Positions 2,237 through 60,670 of a DNA stretch of 64,000 nucleotides are shown here, piece after piece. Every line of letters starts with the position of its first letter. Positions within the stretch are counted from its first letter, which is position 1. The stretch is taken from the IMG/VR virus record IMGVR_UViG_3300026521_000003, positions 225,881-289,880 of that record; one strand, written 5' to 3'. The translations under genes and the position numbers were made by a program. A model generated the notes under the pieces. It saw only the letters and a list, made by a program, of their open reading frames with translations, was not told the origin of the DNA and did not search any database.

Positions 2237-2788
2237 ATGCAGCGTTTATCATCAGAACACAGATCTTTATTACAAACTAATCCACTATTTTCAAAAATGA
2301 TTTTTGAATTTCATGATGGGTGGTTTGAATTAATTTACGACTTGGGTATGAAAATCCTAGGTTATTGTAATGCTAAAAAAATTGAACTTCCTCAAATCCG
2401 CCAAATTAAAGAAAAATTTGGAACTCTCCGTTTTTATTATATTGATAAAACCAATGATGCACAGATTAGAGAGTGGGTTAGAGATGCTGAATCTCGATCA
2501 GAATTTATATGTGAAGAATGTGGTGAACGTGGCGAATTGAGAGTTGATAACGGCAGATGGGGAGTAGTTTGTAGTATTCATAGTTCCCCTACTTCATTAT
2601 CTCTATCAGAATATCAAGAAATGAGAACAAAAGCAGAGCATGAAGCAAGAAAATGTTCTAAATGTGGTATTGGTGGAGCAGAGATTTACTGGGATGGAGC
2701 TCAAACTATAAATTTATGTAATCAGCATAAAGAAAATTATTCTTTATTATCTCAATATTTATCAGAACAAAAGGTTGCGGATCTATGA
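2237..2788 (+). CDS. Conserved phage hypothetical protein (QIKEKFGTLRFY motif, CxxC zinc-binding motifs)
   Basis: GWFELI...QIKEKFGTLRFY...ESRSEFICEECG is a recurrent phage/bacterial motif; second CSKCG. Confidence 0.75.
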   Translation: MQRLSSEHRSLLQTNPLFSKMIFEFHDGWFELIYDLGMKILGYCNAKKIELPQIRQIKEKFGTLRFYYIDKTNDAQIREWVRDAESRSEFICEECGERGELRVDNGRWGVVCSIHSSPTSLSLSEYQEMRTKAEHEARKCSKCGIGGAEIYWDGAQTINLCNQHKENYSLLSQYLSEQKVADL

Positions 2789-3108
2789 CTGAGGCAGAAA
2801 GAAAGTTTTTATATAGTTTTAGTAATAGCATACGGGAAGCTATGTTGGAAGAACATTATATGTTGCATTTTGATGAAGAGAAAGAAGAATTTATATTTGT
2901 TTTAAGAACTGCAACAAATTGTAATACTCGGCATGCACTAACAAAAAAAGAAGTTTTAAGATGGTATTACTCGGAATTAAATAATGATGATTCTAACCTA
3001 CTTAGGAATTTTTCAAATTATTATGATTTAGAATATGATTATTTTTTATTTAAACTTAAAGAAATTATAAAAAAATATTTAAGAATATATCCGGAATATT
3101 TTGTTTAG
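2785..3108 (+). CDS. Hypothetical protein with C-terminal PExxx tag
   Basis: Ends IYPEYFV*; ATGA overlap with the previous gene. Confidence 0.8.
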   Translation: MTEAERKFLYSFSNSIREAMLEEHYMLHFDEEKEEFIFVLRTATNCNTRHALTKKEVLRWYYSELNNDDSNLLRNFSNYYDLEYDYFLFKLKEIIKKYLRIYPEYFV

Positions 3109-3114
3109 GAGTAA

Positions 3115-3453
3115 ATGGTGGAAGAACGGGTTACAGGAACTTTTAAAAATATGGAACAAACATATGGTTCGATTGTTACGGAACGAACTATCAATAATGA
3201 AGTCTTATGGTCTGATACTGATTCCATGAGAGAGTTAAGAGATCGATTAGCTACGATTCATAGTAACCAAATTGATCTTAATTTACTTGAAGAATTAAAA
3301 AGAGTATTGGCAGAACCAATTCAAAAAACAAAAGAAGAGAGAGTTATTGATATTGTTTGTGGTGGTTTTGAAAAACATTTTAATATGTCATTAGACGAAT
3401 TCAATGATATTTATAAAAAAATTTTAGAAAATAATCCAGAAAAATTGATATGA
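3115..3453 (+). CDS. Hypothetical protein with C-terminal PExxx tag
   Basis: Ends NNPEKLI*; AGGAG SD. Confidence 0.8.
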   Translation: MVEERVTGTFKNMEQTYGSIVTERTINNEVLWSDTDSMRELRDRLATIHSNQIDLNLLEELKRVLAEPIQKTKEERVIDIVCGGFEKHFNMSLDEFNDIYKKILENNPEKLI

Positions 3454-3599
3454 ATAGTTTAATAATACCCTTTGCTTTAATATATTTTATTTTTATAGTT
3501 TTAATTTATATTTCTGTTTTATTGAGTATTTTCGTAATTAACAGTTTGACTTATCTAATTTATTACTTTAAGGCACTATTAAGAAAATTAAAACTATAA
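3450..3599 (+). CDS. Small membrane protein (49 aa), not in ORF track
   Basis: ATGA overlap with previous stop; MNSLIIPFALIYFIFIVLIYISVLLSIFVINSLTYLIYYFKALLRKLKL*; fills the intergenic gap exactly. Confidence 0.6.
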   Translation: MNSLIIPFALIYFIFIVLIYISVLLSIFVINSLTYLIYYFKALLRKLKL

Positions 3600-3618
3600 T
3601 ATAATAAAAAGGTTTTTT

Positions 3619-4032
3619 ATGGCTAAATTTAAACGATTTATGTATTCACCATTTATTTTATTTTCTGTATCAATCAGTTTATTCATTATAGGATATTTGA
3701 CTCATCAAATCAATGCTGTAATTCTGTATATGTTAGAATTTACAGTTATTTTTGAACTTGTACGAGGATTTACACATTATTTAAAAGATGGTCAGCTTAA
3801 AGTTCGATATGGTATTGATGCAGCTATTTTTTATTCTATGAAAGAATTATATATAGGATTTGTTGAATTCAAAATTGATAGTGACCCTACACTTATTATG
3901 GTAAGTTTAGTCGTCTTTGTTGTTTTAATATTCGGACGATTTATTAATTCAAAAATGATAGAAGAGAAACGTAAATATTGTAAGTATAATGATGGTACTG
4001 GTAATTGTTCTAAAGATACGTTTAAGGTATAA
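3619..4032 (+). CDS. PsiE-family (phosphate-starvation-inducible) membrane protein
   Basis: Multiple TM segments; ILYMLEFTVIFELVRGFTHYLKDGQLKVRYGIDAAIFYSMKELYI fits the PsiE E..R..ID..RE pattern. Confidence 0.55.
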   Translation: MAKFKRFMYSPFILFSVSISLFIIGYLTHQINAVILYMLEFTVIFELVRGFTHYLKDGQLKVRYGIDAAIFYSMKELYIGFVEFKIDSDPTLIMVSLVVFVVLIFGRFINSKMIEEKRKYCKYNDGTGNCSKDTFKV

Positions 4033-4034
4033 TT

Positions 4035-4628
4035 ATGATTAGAGTTGATATTCAAATGGATAAAGAAGATGCCATCAGAGCTATGCTTGATGGCTATCAT
4101 ATAATTGAATCTACATTACAAAGTAAAAGCGAATATAATGGTGAATATTGTACTTATATAAAAGGTACTTTTAAGCGTATTTCACCAAAAGGTATATCAT
4201 TATTAAATCCGAATGATATGGTTAAAAAATATTGGACAATAGCTAAACCGGTCAAAACAATGTTTCCCAGAAAAATATATAAGACCAATTTAACTACTGG
4301 AGAAATTTTAGAATTAAATTTTGTTGATGTCTATGATAATAGATTAAATGATAAAACTATTGAGAGTATTCTAATTTATAAAACATCTAATAATATTAAT
4401 CCCGAGATTACTATTTGTGCAACAGTAGGAGATTATTTTCAAAATGGAAATAGATTAGTACATTTTAAAACTAAAGGTATTTATTATACTAGGACTAATG
4501 CTGTTTTTGAACTAAAATGTCATATTGATGATATTTTAAGATTGAAGAAACTTAATAAAAAGGTTCCAAAAGCCAAACTATTATTAGTTGAGAATCTTCT
4601 AGAACATTCACCAGAATTGTTTATTTAA
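4035..4628 (+). CDS. Hypothetical protein with C-terminal PExxx tag
   Basis: Ends HSPELFI*. Confidence 0.8.
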   Translation: MIRVDIQMDKEDAIRAMLDGYHIIESTLQSKSEYNGEYCTYIKGTFKRISPKGISLLNPNDMVKKYWTIAKPVKTMFPRKIYKTNLTTGEILELNFVDVYDNRLNDKTIESILIYKTSNNINPEITICATVGDYFQNGNRLVHFKTKGIYYTRTNAVFELKCHIDDILRLKKLNKKVPKAKLLLVENLLEHSPELFI

Positions 4629-4658: not shown

Positions 4659-4946
4659 ATGTATAATATATATGATATAGAAATGGAATTAAATAACCAA
4701 ACATTATATTCCGTTCCTCAATTAGATGGTTCTAAAGTTGAGGCAATTATTAGGATTCTTACTGAAGAGATACGAAATCTTCAGACGTTAAATTCGACTG
4801 TCGAAACATTACAAATGGAATTAAATGCTCTAAAATTTGAACACAAAGAATTAACAAATATTGTAGAAAATATTGGATATGATTACCCTGAAATAATTTT
4901 AAAATATCCCCAATTTTTCACACAAAAGGAAAGTATATGCGAATAG
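4659..4946 (+). CDS. Hypothetical coiled-coil protein
   Basis: 95 aa, heptad-like central region; YPE motif near but not at the C-terminus. Confidence 0.7.
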   Translation: MYNIYDIEMELNNQTLYSVPQLDGSKVEAIIRILTEEIRNLQTLNSTVETLQMELNALKFEHKELTNIVENIGYDYPEIILKYPQFFTQKESICE

Positions 4947-5167: not shown

Positions 5168-5620
5168 ATGAAAATTTATACTTCGTATTATGCTAATATT
5201 AGACATATACCCGATGATTATTTTATAGTCGCTACAAGTGGAGCAATTTCTGATGAAATAGCCTCGGTAGTTGATAGTTGGGACAGAAAGTTAGCACCAT
5301 CAAAAGACATCTATTTTGAATATAAAGATAATCCTGATTGGGAAAAATATACCAGAAGATTCAAAGAAGAAAGACTTAAAAAAATCGATTGGTTAGAGTT
5401 GTTAGAAAAATGGGAAGAAATAGCAAATCAGAAGAATAAACCGTTAGAAAATATTGTATTGTGTTGTTATGAAAAACCGACCGAATTTTGCCATAGACAC
5501 ATTTTGAGCGAAGATCTCGAGAAATTATTTAAAACGGAGGTTAAAGAATTTGGATTGGATCGTCATGAGAGAGTAGACTATAAAATGCAACCAATGGCAT
5601 CCACAGATTTTTTATTTTAA
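5168..5620 (+). CDS. DUF488-family protein
   Basis: MKIYTSYY...LAPS...YTRRFKEE...VLCCYEKPTEFCHRHIL is the typical DUF488 signature. Confidence 0.8.
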   Translation: MKIYTSYYANIRHIPDDYFIVATSGAISDEIASVVDSWDRKLAPSKDIYFEYKDNPDWEKYTRRFKEERLKKIDWLELLEKWEEIANQKNKPLENIVLCCYEKPTEFCHRHILSEDLEKLFKTEVKEFGLDRHERVDYKMQPMASTDFLF

Positions 5621-5621: not shown

Positions 5622-5861
5622 ATGAGTATTTTAGAAAAATCATTAGAAGAATTTATTTTTCCTTTTAGTAAATTGCGATTTGAGTTATTAACTTCACCAT
5701 CAAAAAATAATATAATTCAAGCAGTAGAAACGGTTAAAAGATATTTTTATTCTAATGATTATCCACACGACAAAGATTTATATTTGGATGATTTAATTGC
5801 AATAAAAAATTATATTGAAATTAATTATCCTATTAGTAAATTTCCAGAGTATTACATATGA
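5622..5861 (+). CDS. Hypothetical protein with C-terminal PExxx tag
   Basis: Ends KFPEYYI*. Confidence 0.75.
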   Translation: MSILEKSLEEFIFPFSKLRFELLTSPSKNNIIQAVETVKRYFYSNDYPHDKDLYLDDLIAIKNYIEINYPISKFPEYYI

Positions 5862-6226
5862 AATATTTATGGGTGCAAAAAGGTGGTGGTGATTTTAAAA
5901 TAGGTAAAGATATAACTGAATGCAATCTGAAATTTAATCCTATAAAAATTAATGTGTCGATTGATGAAGATTTTCATAGTAATATAGAATTGCTAAAGTA
6001 TTTACCTGCAGGTACTGATACGGGATCAGGTAACTTTATTATAATGTATGTTGATACTATTGAAAAAGTACGAGTAAAATGGTATAAGTTAATTATATCT
6101 CATTATAATCATTTATTATGTTTAGGAGATTTGATTAATTTATCATCTGACTGGAGTAGTAAGATAAAAGCTATAGAAGAAGAAATAATAAATCATAGAA
6201 AGGGGTATCCAGAATTATGGGTATAA
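5858..6226 (+). CDS. Hypothetical protein with C-terminal PExxx tag
   Basis: Ends GYPELWV*. Confidence 0.8.
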   Translation: MKYLWVQKGGGDFKIGKDITECNLKFNPIKINVSIDEDFHSNIELLKYLPAGTDTGSGNFIIMYVDTIEKVRVKWYKLIISHYNHLLCLGDLINLSSDWSSKIKAIEEEIINHRKGYPELWV

Positions 6227-6462
6227 TATATGATAGATGTAACCTTTTAGCCATGATCGATAGGGTTAAAAATAAAAAATCTATAAGTGAAATAGTTGAT
6301 AGATATGGTTTTTTTAATGTACGCAAAGAGCTATTACTTATGGATGAACTCCGAAAACTACCTAGTTTTAAGGAAGATAGAACATCAAAGCGTAGAAAAG
6401 CCCGTCTTAGTGAACTTACATCTTATTTTTCTAAAGAGGAGTATCCAGAATTATGGGTCTAA
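6217..6462 (+). CDS. Hypothetical protein with C-terminal PExxx tag
   Basis: Ends EYPELWV*; ATG lies inside the previous gene's tag (tta tgg); the start could alternatively be the later MIDRV. Confidence 0.75.
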   Translation: MGIIYDRCNLLAMIDRVKNKKSISEIVDRYGFFNVRKELLLMDELRKLPSFKEDRTSKRRKARLSELTSYFSKEEYPELWV

Positions 6463-6704
6463 ATGATGATTTAGCGAAAGAATTTAAGAATATTAGTTTT
6501 ATAAATCAACTATGTATGGAATGTATATCACCTAAAAGTATTATCGATGAATTTGAGTTGATGTTTGTTCTTCAATTTGTACGTCGTACTCTAGAATATA
6601 AAAATTTTCAATTAAGTGATAATCTTATAAAAAATTCAGAAATTGTTTATACTTATATAGTTCATTTATATCCTGTTGACCAATATCCAGAATTATGGAT
6701 TTGA
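6453..6704 (+). CDS. Hypothetical protein with C-terminal PExxx tag
   Basis: Ends QYPELWI*; ATG lies inside the previous tag. Confidence 0.75.
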   Translation: MGLNDDLAKEFKNISFINQLCMECISPKSIIDEFELMFVLQFVRRTLEYKNFQLSDNLIKNSEIVYTYIVHLYPVDQYPELWI

Positions 6705-6738: not shown

Positions 6739-6978
6739 ATGGAAGAATTTTACGCTAGAATATCTCAGATTCATAGTACTTTCCAACCTGATTTAAATTC
6801 TATTGCTAAGAGAGAATTATTTTTATCAACTATTCAATGTTGCTTAATTACAAAATTTCCACTAATAGCTCATTATGATGGATTGACTATAAATTATTAT
6901 GGTGATGATATTGAAATTTTAATCGATGAAGAATTAGAACAAGAGTTAAAGACTAAATACCCAGAATCATTTAAATAA
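6739..6978 (+). CDS. Hypothetical protein with C-terminal PExxx tag
   Basis: Ends KYPESFK*; start moved from track 6676 (TTG) to ATG 6739, which has an AAGGTGA SD. Confidence 0.7.
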   Translation: MEEFYARISQIHSTFQPDLNSIAKRELFLSTIQCCLITKFPLIAHYDGLTINYYGDDIEILIDEELEQELKTKYPESFK

Positions 6979-7015: not shown

Positions 7016-9019
7016 ATGAAAACATTAATATCATCGAATGTTATAAACAAATTTAAAGCTACAATTTCTGAAGATGAATATTTAGAAAAATATGAAATAC
7101 TCAAAAATTATCAATCATCTAAAAATCAGATTCTAAAAATGAAAGAGACAGAATTTCAAAGTGAATTTTTATCAAGTATTTTTGGTGATGTATTGGGATA
7201 TATTCCTAGAAATAAATCTATTTCAAATCCAAATTTAATAGTTGAAAAGAAAATCGAGGAAGGGCAAAAGTATATTGACGGAGCTATAATTGATAAAAAT
7301 GGACGTTCGAGAATTGTTATTGAACTCAAAAGTACACATCACAAAGATTTATTAGTACAAAAAAATAGTAAAGGTGGATCTGGTTTGCATGGGTTAGCAC
7401 CTATTCAACAAGCATCAATATATTTGTTTTCTGAACCTCTTGCAGCATTAGCAGTAGTTTCTAATTTTGATTCATTAATAATTTTTGATAAAAAAGAATA
7501 CTTTCGTCAAGAGTTTTCATTGTTTGAAATGGATTATGAAGAATTTAAAGAATTTTATTTAATTTTGTCATCAAATAGTTTTTGGTCTGGACTAACAAAA
7601 CTCATGATTGATCAAACTTCTGAATCTGATAAAAAAATTGATGATGAGTTTTTTATTAAAACGACTGCATTATACAGAATGCTTATGAATCAAATGGATA
7701 AAAAATATGCTGAAGACCTTTTTAATAAATTTTTAGCCTTAGCAATACTAGAAGATAATGGTTCATTACCTACAAATTTAATTAATAGTGTTTATGATAA
7801 AAAAGTAGATTTTACTACAAAAGGTAGCTTTTGGGATTTATGGTCTAATTTTTTAAGAGCCATGAAAAATGATACTACATGGCAAAAATCCCAAGGTATT
7901 AATGAAAATATTGTAAAAATGGATGTGTGGCAAGATATATCATATTTTGGGAAAGTTAAAGTAAGTAAAGCTACTTTAGATTTACTATTAGAAATATCCA
8001 AATACGATTTATGGTCTATACCGTTGGATAGATTATTTTTTGAAATATCTAAAGATATTTTTAATCCTTACAATCTAGTTGGTGGTGAAAATTCATTTGA
8101 TTTATATAAAGATATAATGAATGAAAGTAATCATGTTGCTGGTTTCCAAACACTTTCATTTGTTTGTAAACAAATTATGCCAAATGATTTTTCACTAATT
8201 AAGTTGTTTAACGAAATTTCATCAGAAAAAATAGTTGTTATTGATTCATCTGAGAGCAAAATTATTATGGATCGAGTTTCATCATTACCAAATTATTTTT
8301 TAGTAGTTGATTTAGATACACTTGAAGATATAGACTTTTTAAATAGTATTAAAAATGATGTTTTCACAATATCTATAACTGAAGAATATGATGAAATATT
8401 AGTTTTTATCCAAATGTCAATTAAACCCGGTAATGATATATGTGTTCGCAGTATAGACAATAATGGAAATATCGATTATGAATATGAAATTAAAAGAGAA
8501 GAATTGGATAAATTTAAAGTTATGTCAATTAATGATAAAAAATGGTTAGATAAGTATAATGAAACTTCAACGTATAAGTTAAAAAATTTATTAGATGTAT
8601 CATCAGAAGATAAAGCTACAATTAGATTTAATTTTGACACCCAAATAGTTACATTATTTGACGCTGAATTAGGACTATGGGAACAATCTCTAGATGATTT
8701 TATTGATTCAGATAATTATATTTACTTTACACCTAAAGTTGATCATGCTCATTTAATTTTAAAATCATCGGATTTTAAAAAATATCTTAAATTGACGTAT
8801 GTTGATAAAACAAATATATTAGATATTCTAATCTCTGAAAAATTAATAAGTTCTGAGTTTTTAGAACGTGCTATAAAGCAAGAAGAATTAAGAAAACGAA
8901 TTGATTTATTTGAATTAAAATTAGATAAAATAAAACAAACCGATGATGAACTTAAAATTGTCGAATGCGAGTCTCAACTTGATAGATTGTATGAACTTGA
9001 AAATGAATACCGTGAATAG
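7016..9019 (+). CDS. Type IIG/Eco57I-like restriction enzyme-derived protein: PD-(D/E)xK nuclease N-domain, methyltransferase motifs not recognisable
   Basis: KETEFQSEFLSSIFGDVLGY...NLIVEKK...IDGAII...VIELKS...QQASIY...VVSNF...FSLFEMDYEEFKEFYLIL matches N-termini of Type IIG RM proteins; no DPACGSG or (N/D)PPY motif found. Confidence 0.6.
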   Translation: MKTLISSNVINKFKATISEDEYLEKYEILKNYQSSKNQILKMKETEFQSEFLSSIFGDVLGYIPRNKSISNPNLIVEKKIEEGQKYIDGAIIDKNGRSRIVIELKSTHHKDLLVQKNSKGGSGLHGLAPIQQASIYLFSEPLAALAVVSNFDSLIIFDKKEYFRQEFSLFEMDYEEFKEFYLILSSNSFWSGLTKLMIDQTSESDKKIDDEFFIKTTALYRMLMNQMDKKYAEDLFNKFLALAILEDNGSLPTNLINSVYDKKVDFTTKGSFWDLWSNFLRAMKNDTTWQKSQGINENIVKMDVWQDISYFGKVKVSKATLDLLLEISKYDLWSIPLDRLFFEISKDIFNPYNLVGGENSFDLYKDIMNESNHVAGFQTLSFVCKQIMPNDFSLIKLFNEISSEKIVVIDSSESKIIMDRVSSLPNYFLVVDLDTLEDIDFLNSIKNDVFTISITEEYDEILVFIQMSIKPGNDICVRSIDNNGNIDYEYEIKREELDKFKVMSINDKKWLDKYNETSTYKLKNLLDVSSEDKATIRFNFDTQIVTLFDAELGLWEQSLDDFIDSDNYIYFTPKVDHAHLILKSSDFKKYLKLTYVDKTNILDILISEKLISSEFLERAIKQEELRKRIDLFELKLDKIKQTDDELKIVECESQLDRLYELENEYRE

Positions 9020-9269
9020 TAATGGAAGAATATATTCCGAAGAAGTTATAGGAGATGCTATAACTTCTATGATTATACGTAAGAAAATAGGTGAAGGTAC
9101 TATAACTGTTGATAAACTCTATGAGGAATATTCATTTTTAGATATTGATTCAATAGTTGTTGATTTATTTAAAAAGGGTATTCAGGAAAATTATTCTGAG
9201 CAAACCAAAAAATTATTAGAAGAAATAAAAAATGATATTATTGAGCGGAGACCAGAAATTTGGATTTAG
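8943..9269 (+). CDS. Hypothetical protein with C-terminal PExxx tag
   Basis: Ends RRPEIWI*; true start probably ATG 8991 or 9003; contains NSNGRIYSEEV. Confidence 0.7.
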   Translation: MMNLKLSNASLNLIDCMNLKMNTVNSNGRIYSEEVIGDAITSMIIRKKIGEGTITVDKLYEEYSFLDIDSIVVDLFKKGIQENYSEQTKKLLEEIKNDIIERRPEIWI

Positions 9270-11211: not shown

Positions 11212-11793
11212 TTGATGCATATAATATTAACAGATCATGTAAAAAATAGAAGAAAGAAAGGTAAGATCCCACCGCAAAGATTAATAGACTTTGCAACATA
11301 TCTTATAAAAGAACACGATTTAAAAAATAAAGAAGATGGCCGATATAAGTTCCGTAGGAAATCAACATCAGCGATTATTTCTAAGAAAAAAGAAAAATTC
11401 ACATTTATCACCTTTTTTGGTGGTACAGGATGGTTGATTGATTCTGATGATTTTTCCGGATTTAATTGCAAAAAACAAACGGCTGAACGAGTTAAACTTT
11501 CCATAAAAAGAAGTAAAGAGAAGAATAAAAATAAAATTATAAAAGAGATTAAACCATTACAAAACCTTAATGCTGAAATAAAAGATAAACTGAAAAGAGA
11601 CACTTTCAAAATTGATAAGTTGCGGGGCACTACAAAAGTAATTCTTAAAGCTATGTTTGGTAATAATCCTGAATTTTTATTTTTATCTAAATTCAAATCA
11701 TACAATTTAGTTTCAATTTTAAGAAGAGATGGTGGAATTATAAAAACGATTCACAAAAATAAACTTATAGAAATAGGAGTACTAGATGGATAG
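11212..11793 (+). CDS. Basic hypothetical protein
   Basis: 193 aa Lys/Arg-rich; AAGGA SD; start TTG 11212 or ATG 11215. Confidence 0.75.
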   Translation: MMHIILTDHVKNRRKKGKIPPQRLIDFATYLIKEHDLKNKEDGRYKFRRKSTSAIISKKKEKFTFITFFGGTGWLIDSDDFSGFNCKKQTAERVKLSIKRSKEKNKNKIIKEIKPLQNLNAEIKDKLKRDTFKIDKLRGTTKVILKAMFGNNPEFLFLSKFKSYNLVSILRRDGGIIKTIHKNKLIEIGVLDG

Positions 11794-12295
11794 TAATGGT
11801 TTTATAAAGATGATAGGTAAAATGCAAAATATGTGGCAACCTACATATATAGATGAAGAATATGTCAAGGTTTATAAAGATATTTGGTTTGTTGATTCTA
11901 GTTATCCTTTTGAAATAACCAGAGATTATGAAATGGTTTTAAAAAATGAAGATGAAATTTTATCTCAAATTGGTTTATTACCAAATGCTCAAAAAATGGT
12001 ACAAATGATGATGAATTCAACGTACGGTAGTTACGGAGTACCATCGTCAAGATTATATGGAAACCCTTCTCATTATTATGCTCGAACGATGTCTACCAAT
12101 AATTTTTTTAAAGAGTACAAATATGAAGAAGCAGCTAAAGTAGCACAAAATGAAAAATTGATTGCTCACTATAATCATAAAATTAAAAAAGCACCAAAGA
12201 AGAAAGAACAAGTTGAACGTCTTACAAAAATTATTGAAATGCTCGAACAAGAAAACGAAGATTTTATCACAGAATATCCAGAAAGGTTTATTTAA
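11786..12295 (+). CDS. Hypothetical protein with C-terminal PExxx tag
   Basis: Ends EYPERFI*; internal QKMVQMMMNSTYGSYG. Confidence 0.8.
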   Translation: MDSNGFIKMIGKMQNMWQPTYIDEEYVKVYKDIWFVDSSYPFEITRDYEMVLKNEDEILSQIGLLPNAQKMVQMMMNSTYGSYGVPSSRLYGNPSHYYARTMSTNNFFKEYKYEEAAKVAQNEKLIAHYNHKIKKAPKKKEQVERLTKIIEMLEQENEDFITEYPERFI

Positions 12296-12762
12296 TGAAT
12301 ACATCAACAAATCATGTACATACGATTAATACGATACCACTTTATCAAGCCCAACATCATCTAACACAAAAACACCAAAGTACTGGAAGAATCAAGCGTT
12401 CTTTTAATCTTGGTTCCTCTTTCCAAACCGGATATAAATATCGGGTATTAACACGATTTCCATTTAGTGTTTCTAGACATGAGGAACTTGATGAAGTAAC
12501 AGTTTTTGATTTTTTTGACCGTATTACTTATCATCTTTGTGAAACGAGATTGGAAGCTGAAAAAATAAGATTGGAAGCTTTAGAAGAACATTATGATGAA
12601 CAATATAAAAAATATTTAGCAGATACTTCTAAATTTAAGCGCAAATCGTATAAATTTAATGGGTATGTTTCAGTTGATGGTTTAAAGGCCAAAAGGTTAC
12701 TTAATAGATACAAAACTGAATTGAATAATTTGGAAAAGGATCATCCAGAATGGCTAATTTGA
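12295..12762 (+). CDS. Hypothetical protein with C-terminal PExxx tag
   Basis: Ends DHPEWLI*; TAATG overlap. Confidence 0.8.
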   Translation: MNTSTNHVHTINTIPLYQAQHHLTQKHQSTGRIKRSFNLGSSFQTGYKYRVLTRFPFSVSRHEELDEVTVFDFFDRITYHLCETRLEAEKIRLEALEEHYDEQYKKYLADTSKFKRKSYKFNGYVSVDGLKAKRLLNRYKTELNNLEKDHPEWLI

Positions 12763-13100
12763 ATCATATCTTATTGCCGGAACACCGAGGTAGAACATGG
12801 CTTAATAAATGGTGGAAAACTACTTCTTCCATTAATGAAGAAGCGTTCGATATTATACTTGAGCGAGTTAATATTTTAATAGAACGTTTTGAAATTCCTG
12901 TACAAAATCCATCAATGCTAACCTCTATAATGGATCGAATAATTAGGAACTACAATGCTATTGTTTATGAAGAAAATGGAGAAATTATGATAGTTGATTT
13001 ATTTAATTATCAAACGGAGGATACCTATGCTTTTGGCCTTGGTAACACACCAATATTCAATAAGTATATTTTCGATAATTACCCAGAGTTATTAGTATGA
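12750..13100 (+). CDS. Hypothetical protein with C-terminal PExxx tag
   Basis: Ends NYPELLV*; ATG inside the previous tag (gaa tgg). Confidence 0.8.
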   Translation: MANLNHILLPEHRGRTWLNKWWKTTSSINEEAFDIILERVNILIERFEIPVQNPSMLTSIMDRIIRNYNAIVYEENGEIMIVDLFNYQTEDTYAFGLGNTPIFNKYIFDNYPELLV

Positions 13101-13462
13101 TTGATGTAGAAGATATAAAACCAGGTACAGTTATTGAAATTCCATTAAACTTTAAATCGCATAATTTTAGTAATTTAGTTCCTGGTTCACTAGTACTTAT
13201 TTACTATGTGAATAAATTTTTGTGTTCTGGGATTGATATGAAACGTTCAAAGATGATGGGAATGGATATATCATGGGATGATTTAAAGCAGGGAGTAATT
13301 GTAGATTTTATCCCTGAACCAGAACCACTTTTTTATCATTGGGTTGGAGAAGGAAGAACTACTTCGAGTACTGATGCAGTAGAAATTATTTTAAAAAAAC
13401 AAGAATATCGAAAAAAATTAGGTTTATTAATAGCCGAATTTTATCCAGAATATACTTTATAA
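13097..13462 (+). CDS. Hypothetical protein with C-terminal PExxx tag
   Basis: Ends FYPEYTL*; ATGA overlap. Confidence 0.8.
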   Translation: MIDVEDIKPGTVIEIPLNFKSHNFSNLVPGSLVLIYYVNKFLCSGIDMKRSKMMGMDISWDDLKQGVIVDFIPEPEPLFYHWVGEGRTTSSTDAVEIILKKQEYRKKLGLLIAEFYPEYTL

Positions 13463-13474: not shown

Positions 13475-13933
13475 ATGAGTTTAAATTCACTTAATTCTAA
13501 AATCGTATCTAGTCTAGGAGTCCCACTTTCAAAGATTAGACCTTTGAATACAACAATCACATCAGCACCACCTACGGCATCATCGATGGTGATGGGAGTA
13601 GATGTAGCATCTATGTATCCAAGTAGTACTAGTTCTTATAATTCTGGTGGAAATTTAAATTTTGGCTCTTTAATAGATGTACCATATTTAGTTTCTAAAG
13701 ATTTTCCATTTAAAATAAAAGTTATTTCAAAATCGGATATTAAAACTATTCAAAATAGTTTTAGTGATATGATTGATCTTATGAGTAAGTATGATGGATA
13801 TGGCTCAAGATTAGAAGCTGAGAAACAGCGTATTAAAAAACTTATAGATGCCACCGTAGATATTAGTATAGTAAAAGAATTAGAAAAATCATTAGAAAAC
13901 ATTGAAGTAGATCATCCAGAGTGGCTAATTTAA
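13475..13933 (+). CDS. Hypothetical protein with C-terminal PExxx tag
   Basis: Ends DHPEWLI*; internal VMGVDVASMYPS. Confidence 0.8.
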   Translation: MSLNSLNSKIVSSLGVPLSKIRPLNTTITSAPPTASSMVMGVDVASMYPSSTSSYNSGGNLNFGSLIDVPYLVSKDFPFKIKVISKSDIKTIQNSFSDMIDLMSKYDGYGSRLEAEKQRIKKLIDATVDISIVKELEKSLENIEVDHPEWLI

Positions 13934-53473: not shown

Positions 53474-53504
53474 TAGATAGGATTAGAGAATAAATAAAAA
53501 TAAA

Positions 53505-55208: not shown

Positions 55209-55769
55209 ATGACATCATTTAAAGATTATTATCATGATCCTTTTAGTATCCCTAGTACGGAAGATAAAAAATTTATTATTGGTCCTATAAAGCCAATGTA
55301 TGCATTACTAATAGATTCAATGGGATATAATAATATTGATGTTGATGAACTGTATGACCCTACTAATTTTAAAAAAGAGTACGAACAAGCTAAAAAAAAT
55401 CTTGAAGTGTATATGAAAGATTTGCTTATTAAATCTCAATTAATGGGTTTTTCAAAAAATGCACTTACAATAATTGTTGCCCAAAATAATGATTCTGTGT
55501 ATGTATTGAAAGGTGAGTTTGTATTACGGGTGATAAATGACTTTAAACTGAATAAAATTAAATTAGCTGATAAAACTTTTAAAGAATTTAAAGACTTTGT
55601 AGAAAATAATACAGATTACTGGTCTAATTCATTAATTGAAATAGATAAAATAACTATTAATATTGGAAATTCGCTTGAGGATTATCTGTTTTTAATGGAT
55701 CGATATGAGATTTATGATGAAACATTTAAGGAACGTTTAAAAACTGCACAGGATATTTTTATATTTTAG
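55209..55769 (+). CDS. DIFIF-tagged protein
   Basis: Ends ERLKTAQDIFIF*. Confidence 0.85.
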   Translation: MTSFKDYYHDPFSIPSTEDKKFIIGPIKPMYALLIDSMGYNNIDVDELYDPTNFKKEYEQAKKNLEVYMKDLLIKSQLMGFSKNALTIIVAQNNDSVYVLKGEFVLRVINDFKLNKIKLADKTFKEFKDFVENNTDYWSNSLIEIDKITINIGNSLEDYLFLMDRYEIYDETFKERLKTAQDIFIF

Positions 55770-56003: not shown

Positions 56004-56681
56004 ATGAGCGGCTGGTTTGATTCTTATAATAATAAAATTGATAGAACAATCGATAATGACAATATTTCATATACTAGTACTTCATTTGAAACTAAAGGAG
56101 AATATACTACTAGTACCACTATTAAAATGCCCACCGTAGAAGTGTTTTTAAAAGCATTAGATGCTTCTAATAAAAAGCTTACAATTCCTCTTAAACAAAT
56201 TATTGATGACTTAACAACACAAGAATTAAATTCTGTTATAGGGCTTTCATCATACAATGCTACAACTCCATTGGGTCATGCAATCAATGCTATGAATGTA
56301 GAAGCTGTTGAGTATTTATTATCATTGTGTGTTGACACTAACTTACATGGACCTAACCAAAAACATATATTGCAAGAATTATTAAATTCAAATGCAACAG
56401 AAAAAAGAATAAGAATTTTAGAAAAGGTTCTTAAAGAGTTTTCTGGCTTTATACCATTAGAACCAAATTATGATGGTCGTTTTTATAGTACGAAGTATTT
56501 AATTGTATTAATCAATAATCGTGCAGTTATGAGAGATACCATTTTTAATATTTATGATAGTTTTCCTCCAAAGCAACGGAAGGAATTAGTTAAGAATTGT
56601 AAAGCGATGCAAGAAATAGCTATAGAGAAAAAAGATTTTGAAATTCTTCCAGATGAAGTAAAGAATATTTTTCTTTTTTAG
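56004..56681 (+). CDS. DIFIF-tagged ankyrin-like protein
   Basis: TTPLGHAINAMNVEAVEYLLSLCVDTN; ends FEILPDEVKNIFLF*. Confidence 0.85.
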   Translation: MSGWFDSYNNKIDRTIDNDNISYTSTSFETKGEYTTSTTIKMPTVEVFLKALDASNKKLTIPLKQIIDDLTTQELNSVIGLSSYNATTPLGHAINAMNVEAVEYLLSLCVDTNLHGPNQKHILQELLNSNATEKRIRILEKVLKEFSGFIPLEPNYDGRFYSTKYLIVLINNRAVMRDTIFNIYDSFPPKQRKELVKNCKAMQEIAIEKKDFEILPDEVKNIFLF

Positions 56682-57685
56682 AATATAAAAATTTCTCTAA
56701 CTTCAGGAAGTAATTTTAAAACATCTTCATAATATTCCCAATCAGTTTCTTTGGTTAAGACCTCTTTAAATTTATCACTTTTTTCCATTAGTGCAATAAC
56801 TAGATCTTCCCACATACCTAAACCTCGATTATCAACTCTTTTGACTAAGCCTTTAGCTAGTTCTTCCCATTCGTTATCGATAAATGTTATATTATCTAAA
56901 AATATATCTTTTTTATCTGGGAAAAACGATGCCAATTCTCCTATTAAAGAGTCACCGGTTGTATCTTCAGAGAATCCTATATATCTAACTAATTTTTTTA
57001 TGATTTTATCATTATTTTCAGCTATAATCCAAACCGGCGGAATTGTTTGGTGTTCGGCTATGTTTGAAGGCCTTATAATTGCATACTTCATATAAAGATC
57101 CAATATTTCTTCATTAATAATTTTTTCATCTAAATTATCATATAATATCTTTTGTACAATTCTTCCTTTGAATCCTCCGTCTTCAAAAGTATTCCAAGGA
57201 TAATTGTCTGCTCCATATTTTTTTATAAGCCATTCCATTGCGGGTATATTTCTAAACTTTCCAAATTCTTCAAAAATTTTAATATGGTCAAAATTTTCTA
57301 ATTTCCCTTCTTTATCCAGTTGAGTTAATTTACCTACCGTAAATGGACTTGAAAAAGATATTTCATTTAAGTCTTCGTCAATTGCCCACTCTTTAAGTTC
57401 ATCACTAAAATGCTCAGGTTTCACTTTTTTTAATTTTGCTGCTGAAATGGCATATCTTCCTGTTGGAGTTGATGAAATAGATTGTCCAGAATTACGAATC
57501 GCATCTATAATCATTTCGCTAGTTTTATTAAATAATTCTTTTCGAGCAATAGATTTATAATTATTTCCTTGGTCAAAAAACGATATAGCACTTTGTTTGA
57601 TACCAATCCCATCTTCTCTTAATTTTTCCAACCATTTCATAATATTCTTTCTTGCACTTAATGAGAGATTTAATGATAAAGCCAT
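56678..57685 (-). CDS. DIFIF-tagged protein (minus strand)
   Basis: Ends LKLLPEVREIFIF*; late promoter AATAAATA at 57705-57712 and AAGGA SD. Confidence 0.88.
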   Translation of the reverse strand: MALSLNLSLSARKNIMKWLEKLREDGIGIKQSAISFFDQGNNYKSIARKELFNKTSEMIIDAIRNSGQSISSTPTGRYAISAAKLKKVKPEHFSDELKEWAIDEDLNEISFSSPFTVGKLTQLDKEGKLENFDHIKIFEEFGKFRNIPAMEWLIKKYGADNYPWNTFEDGGFKGRIVQKILYDNLDEKIINEEILDLYMKYAIIRPSNIAEHQTIPPVWIIAENNDKIIKKLVRYIGFSEDTTGDSLIGELASFFPDKKDIFLDNITFIDNEWEELAKGLVKRVDNRGLGMWEDLVIALMEKSDKFKEVLTKETDWEYYEDVLKLLPEVREIFIF

Positions 57686-58671: not shown

Positions 58672-58749
58672 ATTTAACTCCTTATTTTCTTATTTATATT
58701 TATGATTAAATTTTGTATAATGTATAATATAATAAAAAAGGAAAAAAAT

Positions 58750-59076
58750 ATGAGTTTAAGAATTTTACCAATAGCGGCATTAGGTGCTGTAGCATTAGGT
58801 GCATTGACTATCGTTACAAGTCTATTAGAAGAAGATACAACACCTAAAAAAGTTGACAGTCCTGATTATCTTAAAAATAAGATGAAAAGAATTAATGATG
58901 AATTAGCCAGATTATCAGATATTAAAATGTTGAATGACAAAAGAGAATCAACAAAGCAAGTTTCTAAGGTTGATTTAATGATTGATGGGGTTGAAATAAA
59001 TGAATTAATTCAAATGTTGGAAGAAGAATTATCTAAAGTTGTTAAAGAATATAATAGTATGTATAAAAAAGTTTAA
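58750..59076 (+). CDS. Membrane-anchored coiled-coil protein
   Basis: Start moved to ATG 58750 (AAGGA SD, TGTATAAT at 58714); N-terminal hydrophobic ILPIAALGAVALGALTIV. Confidence 0.75.
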   Translation: MSLRILPIAALGAVALGALTIVTSLLEEDTTPKKVDSPDYLKNKMKRINDELARLSDIKMLNDKRESTKQVSKVDLMIDGVEINELIQMLEEELSKVVKEYNSMYKKV

Positions 59077-59086
59077 AAGTGTACAA

Positions 59087-59299
59087 ATGGATGATACCCA
59101 ATTCAATAAACTTATGAGTATATTTGAAAATGAATACCCTGATATTTATTTAAAATTGATTAATTATCCTCGTTCTGTACTTGAAGGAACGTTTATAGAT
59201 TTATTAACTAGTAAAATTAATATATCTGATAATGAGCAGGTCCAGAATTTTTTTAAATTTCGTAGTGCATTAACACCGTACTTAGATAATTTTGTATAA
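59087..59299 (+). CDS. Hypothetical protein
   Basis: Track ORF 59039..59299; ATG 59087 avoids overlap. Confidence 0.65.
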   Translation: MDDTQFNKLMSIFENEYPDIYLKLINYPRSVLEGTFIDLLTSKINISDNEQVQNFFKFRSALTPYLDNFV

Positions 59300-59321
59300 A
59301 AAATAAAAATAAAGTGAAACA

Positions 59322-60200
59322 ATGGAATTTATTTCTTTAAGTCATGTGCATAATAATGTATTAAAACAATATGGGAAGCATAAGCATTTAAAATCAAAAA
59401 TAAACGATTATTTTAATAGTTTTGTAGATCAACACCAAGATTTAAAATATTTGTGGTATGATGGTAAAGCTTATGTACCATCACAGTTTGGTTTTCAACT
59501 TAAAAAAGAGATTGAGAAGAAAATTAATAAATCTATAAGACCAATTCATGCCAAAATTTTTAATAAAACTGATGAATTATTATTAAAAGATAATATTTAT
59601 ATTAAGCAAAAATTAGCTGAAAAAAAGCAACAAGTTAAAGATTTAGCTAGTGCTAAAAGAGAATCAAATATTTTAAAGTTAAAAGATTGTGTGAGAAAGA
59701 TAAAATCTGGAGAAATACAATTTATCGGTTCGTTTGATTTAGAATTTTGGGAACGAGATATGAATCGTATTTTAGAATTCGGTTGGTCTATAATGGATTA
59801 TAATGGCAGTACCACAACTACTCATATTGTAGTCCAAGATAATCTCAATTATGAAAATGGAATTTTTTCTAAAAATAATAGGTATGCAAGAAAAGATTCA
59901 AAAACAAAACCACTTAAACTAGCTATAAAAGAATTTAAAGAAAAATTTATTAATAAAGTTGATCTATTTATTGGACATGGTTTAACAAATGACTTTAAGG
60001 TCTTAAAAGCTAACGGAGTAAATTTAGATATTGAATATTTAGATACTGCAGAAATCGGTGCAGCATTAATGGGTGAAGATGATAATGTTAGTATTGAAAG
60101 ACTATTAAAATTTTTAAATATAGAGAGTTCTAACTTACATAATGCAGCAAATGATGCAGAATACGTCCTAGAAGCATTTAAAGTTATGGGGGAGATATAA
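59322..60200 (+). CDS. DEDDh-family 3'-5' exonuclease
   Basis: FDLEFWE (ExoI), FIGHGLTNDFKVL (ExoII), LDTA, LHNAANDA (ExoIII). Confidence 0.85.
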   Translation: MEFISLSHVHNNVLKQYGKHKHLKSKINDYFNSFVDQHQDLKYLWYDGKAYVPSQFGFQLKKEIEKKINKSIRPIHAKIFNKTDELLLKDNIYIKQKLAEKKQQVKDLASAKRESNILKLKDCVRKIKSGEIQFIGSFDLEFWERDMNRILEFGWSIMDYNGSTTTTHIVVQDNLNYENGIFSKNNRYARKDSKTKPLKLAIKEFKEKFINKVDLFIGHGLTNDFKVLKANGVNLDIEYLDTAEIGAALMGEDDNVSIERLLKFLNIESSNLHNAANDAEYVLEAFKVMGEI

Positions 60201-60670
60201 TGGAAATTACAACTTTAGAACAATTGCAAGTTATTGCTAATGACACACCTTTATTTGTTATACCTCAAATTTCATTTCGTGCAACACCTAATAATTATTG
60301 GACATCAATATCTGCAACATTTAAACGTTATCATCCTGTACAAAGAATAGTAAAAATAGAGCCTGAAGATATTTATGATATAAGTTATGTTAATGAACCA
60401 GGTGAAATTGAAAGAGCATATCACCTAGATCCTGAAGCATTAGCAGAGTATTTTATAGAAAATCGATATGGTGATGATCATGCTATCGGTGACCCTATTT
60501 TAGTATTTACTGAAGAACAAGAAGCATTTAAACGTTTTTATATAGATTTTAAAAAATCCTTAGAAAGTGAAAATAGATTGCATAAAACCTTAGAAAGAAT
60601 GAATGAAGATTTAGAAAATTCTTCATTTTTAAAAGAAGATATGAATAAATACCCTGAGAGATGGGTTTAA
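60200..60670 (+). CDS. Hypothetical protein with C-terminal PExxx tag
   Basis: Ends KYPERWV*. Confidence 0.8.
   Translation: MEITTLEQLQVIANDTPLFVIPQISFRATPNNYWTSISATFKRYHPVQRIVKIEPEDIYDISYVNEPGEIERAYHLDPEALAEYFIENRYGDDHAIGDPILVFTEEQEAFKRFYIDFKKSLESENRLHKTLERMNEDLENSSFLKEDMNKYPERWV

Follow-up and report, generated by a model that had tools for sequence, protein, structure and literature searches.

A shared Pro-Glu C-terminal tail on small proteins of an uncultured deep-sea-vent giant phage

Genes of the tagged block and their relatives

The stretch of DNA analysed here, referred to as the window, comprises the last 64 kb of a 290-kb IMG/VR phage contig from hydrothermal-vent samples, and one block of it is occupied by small ORFs of which about forty percent, mostly unrelated to each other, end in a common six-residue tail (aromatic-Pro-Glu-x-hydrophobic-hydrophobic-stop). 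The original prediction listed 15 ORFs with Pro-Glu (PE) at exactly positions -5/-4 from the end of the protein, and all 15 exist at the stated coordinates on the + strand and end as described (Table 1). The observation is thus confirmed, and is stronger than first claimed. The block also holds counter-defence and nucleic-acid enzymes, including Apyc1, Tpt1, CYTH, RNase HII and DUF488, and in one relative an Acb2/Tad1-like gene. The statement that 14 of the 15 ORFs lie between 2.8 and 13.9 kb is true for the window, but the block continues about 6.5 kb upstream of it with 7 more tagged ORFs. Six other related phage contigs (anchor protein 36-87% identical) carry 68 more tagged ORFs in the same syntenic block, and the tail is kept in all relatives found; relatives are denoted here by L and P numbers.

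Table 1. Tagged and related ORFs of the window, with the tails of their homologs
Position (strand)	Product	C-terminus	Observations
2785..3108 (+)	107 aa	IYPEYFV	L005 ortholog ends HPEYFV; no Pfam or PHROG hit
3115..3453 (+)	112 aa	NNPEKLI	Family present in L005, L006, L009 (three close copies plus two distant ones) and P0043; P, E, K and L invariant in the 9-sequence alignment; AF2 model of low confidence
4035..4628 (+)	197 aa	HSPELFI	L005 ortholog ends SPELLI; followed by a 30-nt gap with a TGTATAAT box
4659..4946 (+)	95 aa, related ORF	Tag-like DYPEIIL 14 residues before the end	Same internal motif kept in L006:5763-6062 and in two L009 paralogs; looks like a tag followed by an extension
5622..5861 (+)	79 aa	KFPEYYI	L005 ortholog has the same tail; stop overlaps the next start (ATGA); Glu coded GAG
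5858..6226 (+)	122 aa	GYPELWV	Orthologs in L005, L006, L008 and L010 keep the tag; next gene starts at the ATG formed by the Leu-Trp codons of the tail
6217..6462 (+)	81 aa	EYPELWV	L005 ortholog ends FPELWV; same 10-nt overlap junction as the previous gene
6453..6704 (+)	83 aa	QYPELWI	Only a weak link to L006:8620-8970 (E 0.001); third of three consecutive YPELW genes sharing the 15-nt string TATCCAGAATTATGG
6739..6978 (+)	79 aa	KYPESFK; atypical, possibly decaying tag	ATG start inside a longer TTG ORF that begins at 6676; 79-aa version matches the gene called in the relative; orthologs end YPEALL (L007), HPEALI (L008) and YPEALI (L010); L005 ortholog reads YLESFN
8943..9269 (+)	Up to 108 aa, start uncertain	RRPEIWI	L005 ortholog has the same tail; the RNase HII ORF starts (TTG) inside the tail codons
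10888-11205	DIFIF-type gene		Lies inside the PE block
11786..12295 (+)	169 aa	EYPERFI	Orthologs end YPEKFI (L005) and YPERYL (L006)
12295..12762 (+)	155 aa	HPEWLI family	Paralog of 13475 (E 6e-5); family has 68 metagenomic cluster representatives that all end [HY]PEWx[IV]
12750..13100 (+)	116 aa	NYPELLV	Orthologs in L005 and L006 keep YPELL[VI]
13097..13462 (+)	121 aa	FYPEYTL	L005 ortholog has the same tail
13475..13933 (+)	152 aa	HPEWLI family	Last gene before the DIFIF array; in the AF2 model residues 65-152 have pLDDT of about 90, the tail block 87, and PEW forms a short helical turn after a break at His; Foldseek found nothing in PDB or BFVD
60200..60670 (+)	156 aa	KYPERWV	Outside the block, next to a DEDDh exonuclease gene; P0002 is 85% identical with the same tail; homolog in L006 (5259-5720, ends YPEDWI) sits inside the PE block

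Enrichment and position of the motif

Among + strand ORFs of at least 40 aa, PE sits at -5/-4 in 15 of 113, compared with 0 of 84 on the - strand. In a set of 89 non-overlapping + strand ORFs the PE dipeptide frequency is 0.0037, and 0.33 occurrences are therefore expected at any fixed position, whereas 15 are observed (binomial p about 1e-20). PE counts at offsets from -2 to -30 are 0-1, with the exception of -5 (15) and of -9/-10 (9, contributed by the LPxE of the DIFIF family), and in unrelated bacterial loci used as a control only 3 of 2046 ORFs (0.15%) carry PE at -5/-4. Chance, or a composition artefact of an AT-rich genome, has nothing in its favor beyond the short length of the motif, and is refuted by these counts and by conservation of the motif in all seven related contigs and in 68 metagenomic clusters.

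Residue -6 of the 15 ORFs is Y or H in 11, F in one, and N, S and R in one each, and the last residue is I, V or L in 14 of 15, the exception being 6739, whose ortholog in the closest relative has lost the Pro. Over the wider set, the logo of 74 tags reads [YHFN]-P-E-x-[LWF]-[IVL], and the last residue is I, V or L in 74 of 75 tabulated tags. The motif pattern matches 69 C-termini and 9 internal sites, of which 5 lie within 22 residues of the end, and one family keeps the motif 13-22 residues away from its end. In the HPEWLI family, all 68 full-length cluster representatives (clustered at 50% identity) end exactly three residues after Glu, with no extension. The helix preceding the tag, which had been described as amphipathic, is only modestly more so than controls (0.31 versus 0.26, p 0.005-0.02). 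The tails are acidic plus hydrophobic, and no signal peptide, membrane segment or hydrophobic stretch of 18 aa or more occurs in the PE proteins.

Selection on the protein rather than on the nucleotide sequence

All four Pro codons, both Glu codons and both Tyr codons occur in tags across relatives, and stop codons vary, so selection acts on the protein. A nucleotide-level signal at gene ends, acting in translational coupling, as a Shine-Dalgarno substitute or as a recombination linker, could in principle have produced the amino-acid pattern as a by-product. Consistent with this possibility, 35 of 68 tagged genes overlap the next start, the Trp codon supplies the next ATG in 15 junctions, Glu is GAG in 13 of 19 junctions of the -4/-1 type versus 11 of 49 elsewhere (p 6e-4), and CCA is over-used in this phage (13 of 15 against a 44% background). 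However, PE is fixed relative to its own stop codon and not to the next start, which lies anywhere from -13 to more than +60 nt away, 19 tags are followed by a gap of more than 15 nt, CCN is not Shine-Dalgarno-like, and the substitutions seen are conservative at the amino-acid level. This reading is already largely refuted, and is very unlikely.

Relatedness of the tagged proteins

Within the window, the tagged bodies are unrelated by BLASTP, except for the paralogs 12295 and 13475. When the tail is trimmed, the 89 tagged ORFs from 8 loci fall into 49 BLAST families with no significant profile-profile links, family HMMs giving only weak cross-hits (best PE-to-PE E 2e-4) and tail-trimmed hhalign probabilities reaching at most 24%. 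Eight tagged ORFs in L006 and L007 have no homolog in the window. The tail is also more conserved than the body, as homologs from different phages are 34% identical in the body, 69% in the three residues after PE and 62% at -6, and the gene that moved out of the block, 60200, kept the tag.

The main competing explanation is that the tail is a structural cap inherited by descent, whereby the tagged genes would represent one old, tandemly duplicated superfamily of small helical proteins whose bodies have diverged beyond recognition, and the tail (a Pro helix stop plus a hydrophobic clasp folding back on the last helix) would survive because each protein needs it to fold, with no shared partner. 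The tandem arrangement of the genes, the shared 10-nt overlap junction in runs of YPELW genes, the string TATCCAGAATTATGG common to three neighbors, and weak profile links among the HPEWLI, NPELWI and YPERFI families are all in line with this view. Moreover, Tyr, His, Asn and Phe are common helix C-cap residues, Pro commonly follows a cap, and residues -3 and -2 are family-specific (W in all HPEW members, K in all NPEK members, A in YPEA members), suggesting contacts with each protein's own body. In the one confident AF2 model the tail, with high pLDDT, continues the helical domain rather than forming a floppy linker plus peptide, and the family with an internal motif also fits a structural role. 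Yet most family pairs show no detectable relation once the tail is removed, and lengths range from 60 to 197 aa with different predicted architectures. A cap needed only for folding should tolerate extensions, whereas 68 of 68 HPEWLI-family ends and 69 of 78 motif matches are exactly terminal, and an invariant Glu across 49 families is not a general requirement of helix caps. The tagged genes lie in tandem, sometimes with identical junctions, so common descent can explain part of the sharing, and very old common descent cannot be excluded for short, fast-evolving proteins, but the structural cap remains only a tentative alternative.

Two adjacent tail classes, and a third

The interpretation offered in the original prediction, that two tag classes segregated by genome block and possibly by expression time imply two receptors or two destinations, is partly supported. 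The PE tail is a real class of C-terminal motif, distinct from the DIFIF tail ([FYL]LPxE[VI]KDIF[IV]F) found on the same strand in the adjacent block, and the two classes occupy adjacent, syntenically conserved blocks in every relative that shows both. The last HPEWLI gene is followed by the ortholog of 14002 in L005 and L006, and a few untagged genes later in L007 and L008. The segregation is not absolute, because a DIFIF-type gene lies inside the PE block and the PE gene 60200 lies beyond the DIFIF array. The claim that the tagged genes lie mostly behind TGTATAAT promoters is not supported, as TGTATAAT is not enriched in the window (12 found, 9.5 expected), and only three copies lie in the block, each at the head of a tightly coupled operon. 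The same box also precedes DIFIF operons and the terminase-region genes, so promoter type does not separate the classes. The claim about expression time is likewise not supported; timing could not be read from the two metatranscriptomes that hold fragments of the phage. Two receptors or two destinations remain an inference, with no receptor found and with a purely structural reading, or one based on common descent, not excluded. A third tail class, [ST]T[DN][FIL]LF on RNase HII and DUF488, was missed by the original prediction.

Like the PE proteins, members of the DIFIF family have a variable N-terminal body and a constant C-terminal end, and one member has ankyrin repeats, which fits an adaptor-plus-docking-tail design. 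The conserved end of the DIFIF family is longer, however, its consensus differs, and the proteins are larger (100-513 aa).

Comparison with characterized C-terminal signals

No known family fits the PE tail. The closest analogy for how it may work is the PTS1 peroxisomal targeting signal, a C-terminal SKL-type tripeptide read by the Pex5 TPR domain, which is likewise a very short motif at the extreme C-terminus of many unrelated proteins, needs the free end and acts as an address. PTS1 is eukaryotic, has a different consensus, and both its receptor and its destination organelle have been identified. The clamp-binding tails of T4/RB69 gp43, gp33 and gp55, and the bacterial QL[SD]LF motifs, are acidic-plus-hydrophobic C-terminal tails by which several different phage proteins dock on one hub. 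The PE tail has no Gln and no terminal Phe, no PE protein has a Pfam or PHROG domain, including any for replication or transcription, and no clamp gene was seen in the DNA examined; the tail in this genome that resembles the clamp-binding type is the [ST]T[DN][FIL]LF / DIFIF type.

The ssrA tag with its SspB adaptor, and other C-terminal degrons, are also end-anchored, with an acidic or aromatic upstream part followed by non-polar last residues, read in two parts by an adaptor and an unfoldase. In the PE tags the last two residues are hydrophobic in nearly all cases, but there is no Ala-Ala, and an invariant Glu sits at -4 with acidic residues upstream; the ssrA tag, moreover, is added by tmRNA rather than encoded in the gene, ends in Ala-Ala and has no Pro-Glu core. 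The terminal position and the last residue (Val, Ile or Leu) agree with ligands of PDZ domains and tail-specific proteases. No PDZ domain was found in the proteins scanned or in Pfam tables covering about 100 kb, a search that leaves out the remaining roughly 210 kb of the genome and the host, and most bacterial PDZ proteases are periplasmic, whereas PE proteins lack a signal peptide. The PEP-CTERM/exosortase sorting signal (Pro-Glu-Pro, then a transmembrane helix and a basic cluster) does not fit, as only three residues follow Pro-Glu.

Encapsulin cargo-loading peptides and the T4 capsid-targeting sequence are short terminal peptides that load unrelated cargo into an HK97-fold shell, but their consensus is different (Gly/Ser/Leu-rich), cargo genes sit next to shell genes, and the T4 signal is N-terminal, while PE genes sit in a non-structural accessory block. 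Another possibility is that the tail is a processing site, cut after the Glu as T4 and phiKZ prohead proteases cut after Glu, and losing its last three residues, for example during loading into the capsid. The invariant Glu at a fixed distance from the end agrees with this, and one sub-threshold Pfam hit of 13475 to phiKZ internal head proteins (phiKZ_IP) was found (E 1.7e-4), but this hit was seen in only 1 of 69 family members, and so is a chance hit. The residues before Glu ([YHF]-P) do not fit the known L/I-x-E or S/A/G-x-E sites, the block lies next to counter-defence genes, and removing three residues has no obvious purpose, making processing an unlikely explanation.

A putative docking motif

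The reading favored here, with a probability of about 0.5, is that the tail is a protein-level, end-anchored docking or address motif. In this view, a C-terminal helix stops at an aromatic, His or Asn cap residue (-6), Pro (-5) breaks the helix, and Glu (-4) and two hydrophobic residues (-2 and -1, the last almost always Ile, Val or Leu) then end in the free carboxylate, which would plug into a pocket on one shared partner, either a phage protein or a conserved host protein that reads free C-termini. Each small acidic protein would then be a variable body, with its own target or activity, joined to a constant plug specifying a common place, machine or fate. Given the accessory block in which their genes sit, the tagged proteins are probably host-takeover or counter-defence factors, and recruitment to a common site and timed removal are the two most likely outcomes of docking. 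What the analysis itself establishes is the motif, its strict end position, selection at the protein level, conservation across a phage clade, and presence on bodies with no detectable relatedness; that the tail binds anything, the identity of a partner, and the outcome of binding, including any degradation, are inferred. No partner was identified, and no PDZ, TPR or other peptide-binding domain was seen in the roughly 100 kb examined.

A more speculative and rather doubtful extension is that this clade of vent jumbo phages runs its own protein-sorting code, in which at least two, perhaps three, genetically encoded C-terminal address labels (the PE tail, the DIFIF tail and the [ST]TD[FIL]LF tail) would route dozens of otherwise unrelated accessory proteins to distinct readers or destinations inside the infected cell, a viral analogue of organelle targeting signals in a bacterial host.

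Short C-terminal docking tails have been described for single hubs such as clamps, SSB and unfoldases. A single encoded end-tag on about 40% of the genes of a phage accessory block, spread over some 49 families with no detectable relatedness and held for the whole depth of a phage clade, has not been described as far as could be found, and searches for the motif strings in 8.4 million papers returned nothing. If the tail is instead a folding cap inherited by descent, it would be a clear case of tandem gene birth in which only a terminal motif survives, useful for recognizing hidden paralogy in phage genomes. If the tail is an address or recruitment signal, it would provide a six-residue tag that could be moved onto reporters, and would give a handle on the function of a large set of phage 'dark matter' ORFs at once, as finding the reader would reveal where all of them act.

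Identification and extent of the tagged block

The window comprises the last 64 kb of the 289,880-bp viral contig IMGVR_UViG_3300026521_000003, window position 1 corresponding to contig position 225,881, and it has a G+C content of about 27% with nearly all genes lying on the + strand; no tRNA genes were found in it. Public sequencing runs that hold the sequence are hydrothermal-vent and epibiont metagenomes. Megablast and tblastn searches against GenBank phages found no relative at the DNA or protein level, apart from one weak partial hit of a 667-aa protein in the middle of the block to a Synechococcus phage.

The observation made in the original prediction, namely that 15 ORFs share a Pro-Glu (PE) dipeptide at exactly -5/-4 from their C-terminus, was confirmed, as all 15 ORFs are present and end as had been listed. 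Pro-Glu sits at this position in 15 of 113 + strand ORFs of at least 40 aa, and in none of 84 on the - strand. In a non-overlapping, gene-like set of 89 + strand ORFs, the PE dipeptide frequency (0.0037) predicts 0.33 cases at any fixed position, whereas 15 are seen (p about 1e-20). Scanning of offsets -2 to -30 gave 0-1 cases everywhere except at -5 (15) and at -9/-10 (9), the latter stemming from the LPxE of the DIFIF family, and in about 600 kb of unrelated bacterial DNA the rate is 3 in 2046 ORFs. A chance origin of the pattern is essentially excluded. The claim that the protein bodies are unrelated also held by BLASTP, except for the pair of ORFs starting at 12295 and 13475 (ORFs are named here by their first window position).

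The block is larger than could be seen from the window alone. The 6 kb upstream of the window (L002) holds six more ORFs with PE at -5/-4, ending YPEEFI, FPEGVL, FPELWV, FPELNV, YPEHII and HPEYKI, and one with a three-residue extension (YPELIVKGI). A further walk, using the same phage assembled from another sample (L011), showed that the + strand unit starts at a strand switch about 4 kb before the first tagged ORF (which ends EFPEKIL), and that the stretch between the switch and the block encodes a class II aminoacyl-tRNA-synthetase-like protein, an Apyc1 anti-Pycsar nuclease and Tpt1. From that first tagged ORF to window position 13,933 is about 20.5 kb, and about 21 of roughly 55 genes in the unit carry the tag, in addition to the one at 60,200. 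The DNA string for YPELW[IV]-stop occurs nowhere else in the 290-kb contig. Other features of the window and of related DNA are collected in the table below.

Features of the window and of related loci (positions are those of the window unless a locus is named)
Feature	Position	Strand	Description
Conserved basic protein	602-1765		387 aa, pI 9.2; among the tagged genes in most relatives
Internal-motif family	4659-4946; L006:5763-6062; L009:5554-5889 and 5900-6223		Tag-like DYPE[IL][IV][LI] 13-22 residues before the C-terminus, in three phages
DUF488	5168-5620		Third tail class, [ST]T[DN][FIL]LF-stop
Tail/start junctions	6217-6226, 6453-6462, 9260-9269, 12750-12762		Tail codons double as the start region of the next gene; same junctions in L006, L007 and L008
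Anchor protein	7016-9019		667 aa; matches only the N-terminal 40% or so of MmeI-type IIG restriction-modification enzymes, with no methyltransferase part
RNase HII	9260-9859		Third tail class, [ST]T[DN][FIL]LF-stop
Acidic protein	9856-10830	-	324 aa, net charge -64, possibly a DNA mimic; among the tagged genes in most relatives
Conserved basic protein	11212-11793		pI 10.2; among the tagged genes in most relatives
DIFIF-type genes	14002-47920, 55209-55769, 56004-56681, 10888-11205; 56678-57685	+; - (56678-57685)	About 50 genes ending [FYL]LPxE[VI]KDIF[IV]F; one member inside the PE block, one on the minus strand
DIFIF member with ankyrin repeats	28839-29291		Ank_2, 5.7e-9
Terminase region	49314-54290		Appears split: 202-aa Terminase_6N fragment, then a 711-aa protein with DUF7487, YunG, Mom-like and REase-like hits, then a 435-aa ORF, then a 261-aa ORF with an intein-splicing remnant
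Extended -10-like boxes	Intergenic gaps at 2205, 4632, 6979, about 27215, about 34500, 49925, 54302		TGTATAAT or GGTATAAT, 20-30 nt before start codons at operon heads, no clear -35
Accessory genes of related DNA	L011:5398-10561, L009:14160-14384, L003:7244-8371		Class II aaRS-like gene, Apyc1 (anti-Pycsar), Tpt1, Acb2/Tad1-hairpin-like gene, flagellar FlgK-like gene, RecA gene with an intein
Tandem HPEWLI-family pair	L061 (QMNM01000219.1)		Two genes on a 3.7-kb Guaymas contig binned as Candidatus Cloacimonadota

Conservation in related phage

The anchor protein found 26 full-length metagenomic homologs with 33-87% identity. DNA around five of them was examined, and a sixth relative (L003/L004) came from the search with the 60200 protein. 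Among the related loci, listed by identity of the anchor, L005 (87%) carries 14 tagged ORFs, L006 (53%) carries 16, L007 (47%) carries 4 plus the near-variants FSEKWI, YSEDFI and NPQWQI, L008 (41%) carries 15, L010 (41%) carries 10, one of which (EPETEV) is a chance match, and L009 (36%, with a G+C content of 38.6%) carries 9. The block order is syntenic, with the ortholog of 14002, the first DIFIF gene, directly following the last HPEWLI-type gene in L005 and L006, and coming a few untagged genes later in L007 and L008.

At the level of BLASTP, every tagged ORF of L006 or L007 that has a detectable window homolog hits a tagged window ORF, and untagged ORFs hit untagged ones, whereas eight tagged ORFs there have no window homolog at all. 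Family HMMs did, however, find a few orthologs whose tag has changed or been lost. The homolog of 60200 lies inside the block in L006, so that gene kept its tag after moving.

The 387-aa basic protein is more conserved than the anchor and has no known fold; an ESM Atlas lead to transglutaminase-like clusters (score 0.77) was dropped, because five orthologs have no invariant Cys and the family has no PDB match. The accessory genes found in related DNA form an unusual set for a phage of vent bacteria.

Selection on the protein rather than the DNA

In the window the Pro codon of the tag is CCA in 13 of 15 cases, against a 44% background. Across relatives, however, all four Pro codons, both Glu codons and both Tyr codons are used, as in L006 (8 CCA, 3 CCT, 4 CCG, 1 CCC) and L009 (5 CCC, 4 CCA). 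Stop codons vary, and the start of the next gene lies anywhere from 13 nt inside the tagged gene to more than 60 nt beyond it, while PE never moves relative to its own stop. The constraint is therefore on the protein.

There is nonetheless a secondary use at the DNA level. Of 68 tagged genes, 35 overlap the next start, and in 15 junctions the Trp codon of the tail (TTA-TGG or GAA-TGG) supplies the next ATG. In junctions of the -4/-1 type, where the stop overlaps the next start (ATGA or TAATG), Glu is GAG in 13 of 19 cases against 11 of 49 elsewhere (p 6e-4), which fits a small Shine-Dalgarno-like role for that codon. None of this explains the invariant Pro, or the 19 tags that are followed by a gap of more than 15 nt, and a reading of the tail as a DNA signal is essentially excluded.

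Anatomy of the motif

A logo was built from the non-redundant tags (75 tabulated, one of them the chance match EPETEV). Position -6 is Y in 38, H in 13, F in 11 and N in 7; -5 is P and -4 is E; -3 is variable (L, K, Y, W, A, I, R); -2 is L in 23, W in 22 and F in 8; and -1 is I in 46, V in 17 and L in 11. Positions -8 and -7 are acidic or polar, and hydrophobic residues recur at -13 and -10, but the helical hydrophobic moment of residues -20 to -6 is only modestly above controls (0.31 vs 0.26, p 0.005-0.02). The proteins are small (60-197 aa, median 113) and acidic (median pI 5.2), they have no membrane segments, and their last 20 residues carry a mean net charge of -1.35.

The motif regex matches 69 C-termini and 9 internal sites. 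Five of those 9 lie within 22 residues of the end, and four of the five belong to the one family (4659-4946 and its orthologs) that keeps the motif before a short extension, which is either a tag that acquired an extension or evidence that the motif can work away from the end.

Two other tail classes are encoded nearby. Nine of ten DIFIF members tested have no Pfam domain, while the ankyrin-repeat member suggests variable binding modules on a constant docking tail. The [ST]T[DN][FIL]LF class is found on the two recognisable nucleic-acid enzymes of the block and, in the forms TTNILF, STDFLF, TTDILF, TTDLLF, QADILF, NMDILF and KTDILF, is conserved with their orthologs in L006, L007, L008, L009 and L010; it resembles both the clamp-binding tails of the T4/RB69 type and the DIFIF end.

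Relatedness of the protein bodies

With the last eight residues removed, the 89 tagged ORFs form 49 single-linkage BLAST families. Family HMMs give only weak cross-hits between tagged families (best E 2e-4), and hhalign between the 20 multi-member families peaks at 24% probability, within a weak trio of HPEWLI, NPELWI and YPERFI. Pfam and PHROGs scans of 35 PE proteins found nothing significant. So most bodies are unrelated as far as sequence methods can see, although very old common descent of short, fast-evolving proteins cannot be excluded, and the tandem arrangement with repeated junctions (three neighbouring genes share TATCCAGAATTATGG) points to duplication for at least the YPELW runs. 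The tail variant is family-specific (HPEWLI, NPEKLI, YPEALI, YPEYVL, YPERFI, YPELLV), and between phages homologs are 34% identical in the body, 69% in the three residues after PE and 62% at -6.

The depth of one family was explored by searching a profile of ten HPEWLI-family members against 1.84 billion cluster representatives (50% identity clustering), which found 76 proteins at E up to 0.001. Of these, 68 end in [HY]PEWx[IV] exactly at the C-terminus, with lengths of 67-227 aa, and none of the 68 carries an extension past the tail. The eight exceptions were five long proteins matched only through the low-complexity N-terminal part of the profile, one fragment that lacks the C-terminal part, and two variants, HPQWII and NPDLLI. 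In the 69-sequence alignment the only invariant or nearly invariant positions are M1, P78, A115, E116 and the tail residues H, P, E, W and I. A lead from 13475 to phiKZ internal head proteins (E 1.7e-4) was dropped because only 1 of 69 family members shows it, and four members gave weak Ribonuc_red_lgC hits.

Natural variants seen in orthologs of other families are P to S (YSEDFI), E to D (FPDKLI), E to C (NPCAWI) and E to Q (NPQWVI). The tag has been lost outright in the window ortholog of L010:144-383, and it has decayed in the L005 ortholog of 6739.

Searches of IMG/VR with degenerate DNA patterns for EHPEWxI-stop and YPELW[IV]-stop returned, apart from the contig of the window and its close relative, only chance matches. 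The same kind of pattern in GTDB genomes gave 75 loci, of which only one is real, the Guaymas contig L061. Although this contig lies inside a bacterial MAG, it is most likely a mis-binned phage fragment, and so gives no evidence about the host.

Predicted structure

The AF2 model of 13475, made with ten homologs, shows a disordered Ser/Thr-rich N-terminus (residues 1-64) and a confident alpha/beta domain (65-152, pLDDT about 90), in which the last long helix breaks at His147, PEW forms a short helical turn, and the tail block has a pLDDT of 87. The model of 3115, made with nine homologs, is of low confidence (mean 52), but it shows the same break before Pro and a short terminal turn. Foldseek searches of the HPEWLI model against PDB and BFVD, and a profile search (profile A2) against PDB sequences, found nothing, and ESM Atlas look-alikes were uninformative.

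Promoters and expression

The interpretation offered in the original prediction was partly supported. That there are two distinct tail classes in adjacent, syntenically conserved blocks is real, but the accompanying claims, that the tagged genes lie mostly behind sigma70-like promoters and that the classes may be separated by expression time, are not supported. Both a sigma-70 consensus scan and the count of TGTATAAT (12 found, 9.5 expected) are at chance level in this AT-rich DNA. Three copies of TGTATAAT do sit in intergenic gaps at operon heads within the block (2205, 4632, 6979), but the same or a near-identical box precedes DIFIF operons and the terminase-region genes. Metatranscriptome contigs cover only fragments of about 150-280 nt outside the PE genes, and so give no expression evidence. 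That the block is early is plausible from its position after a strand switch and from its counter-defence genes (Apyc1, and an Acb2/Tad1-like gene in L009), but this remains to be shown, and the proposal of two receptors or two destinations remains a hypothesis.

Comparison with known systems and interpretation

In how the PE tail may work, the closest analogues are C-terminal addresses of the PTS1 type, the clamp-binding tails shared by several T4 proteins, the ssrA/SspB two-part degron and encapsulin cargo peptides. In membership, none of these clearly fits. The consensus features of the clamp motif, of encapsulin cargo peptides and of PEP-CTERM signals were looked for and are absent, whereas the features of PDZ ligands (a strictly terminal motif with V, I or L as the last residue) are present, but no receptor was found among the proteins scanned. 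As in degrons of the ssrA type, the last two residues are hydrophobic in nearly all tags and the motif is strictly terminal, but there is no Ala-Ala, and an invariant Glu sits at -4 with acidic residues upstream. Full-text searches for HPEWLI, YPELWV, YPELWI and KDIFIF returned no paper, and keyword searches found nothing relevant.

The most likely reading, to which a probability of about 0.5 is given, is that the tail is an end-anchored docking or address motif. The strict terminal position, the invariant Pro-Glu across bodies with no detectable relatedness, tail conservation well above body conservation, retention after gene relocation, and the acidic-plus-hydrophobic chemistry typical of tails that dock on hubs all argue for this view. 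The main alternative, a structural cap inherited by descent, is the less likely of the two but remains possible, given the confident, helix-continuing tail in the one good model, the family-specific residues at -3 and -2, the one family with an internal copy of the motif, and the signature of tandem duplication. A reading of the tail as a cleavage site rests on little and is improbable. What the analysis establishes is a robust, clade-wide, protein-level C-terminal motif on many small phage proteins with no detectable relatedness; that the motif is bound by a reader, or marks a destination, is inferred. C-terminal tags are as such a known kind of signal, but no known system clearly fits this tag. 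The two leading readings are partly compatible, because descent can explain the origin of the tag and docking can explain its retention.
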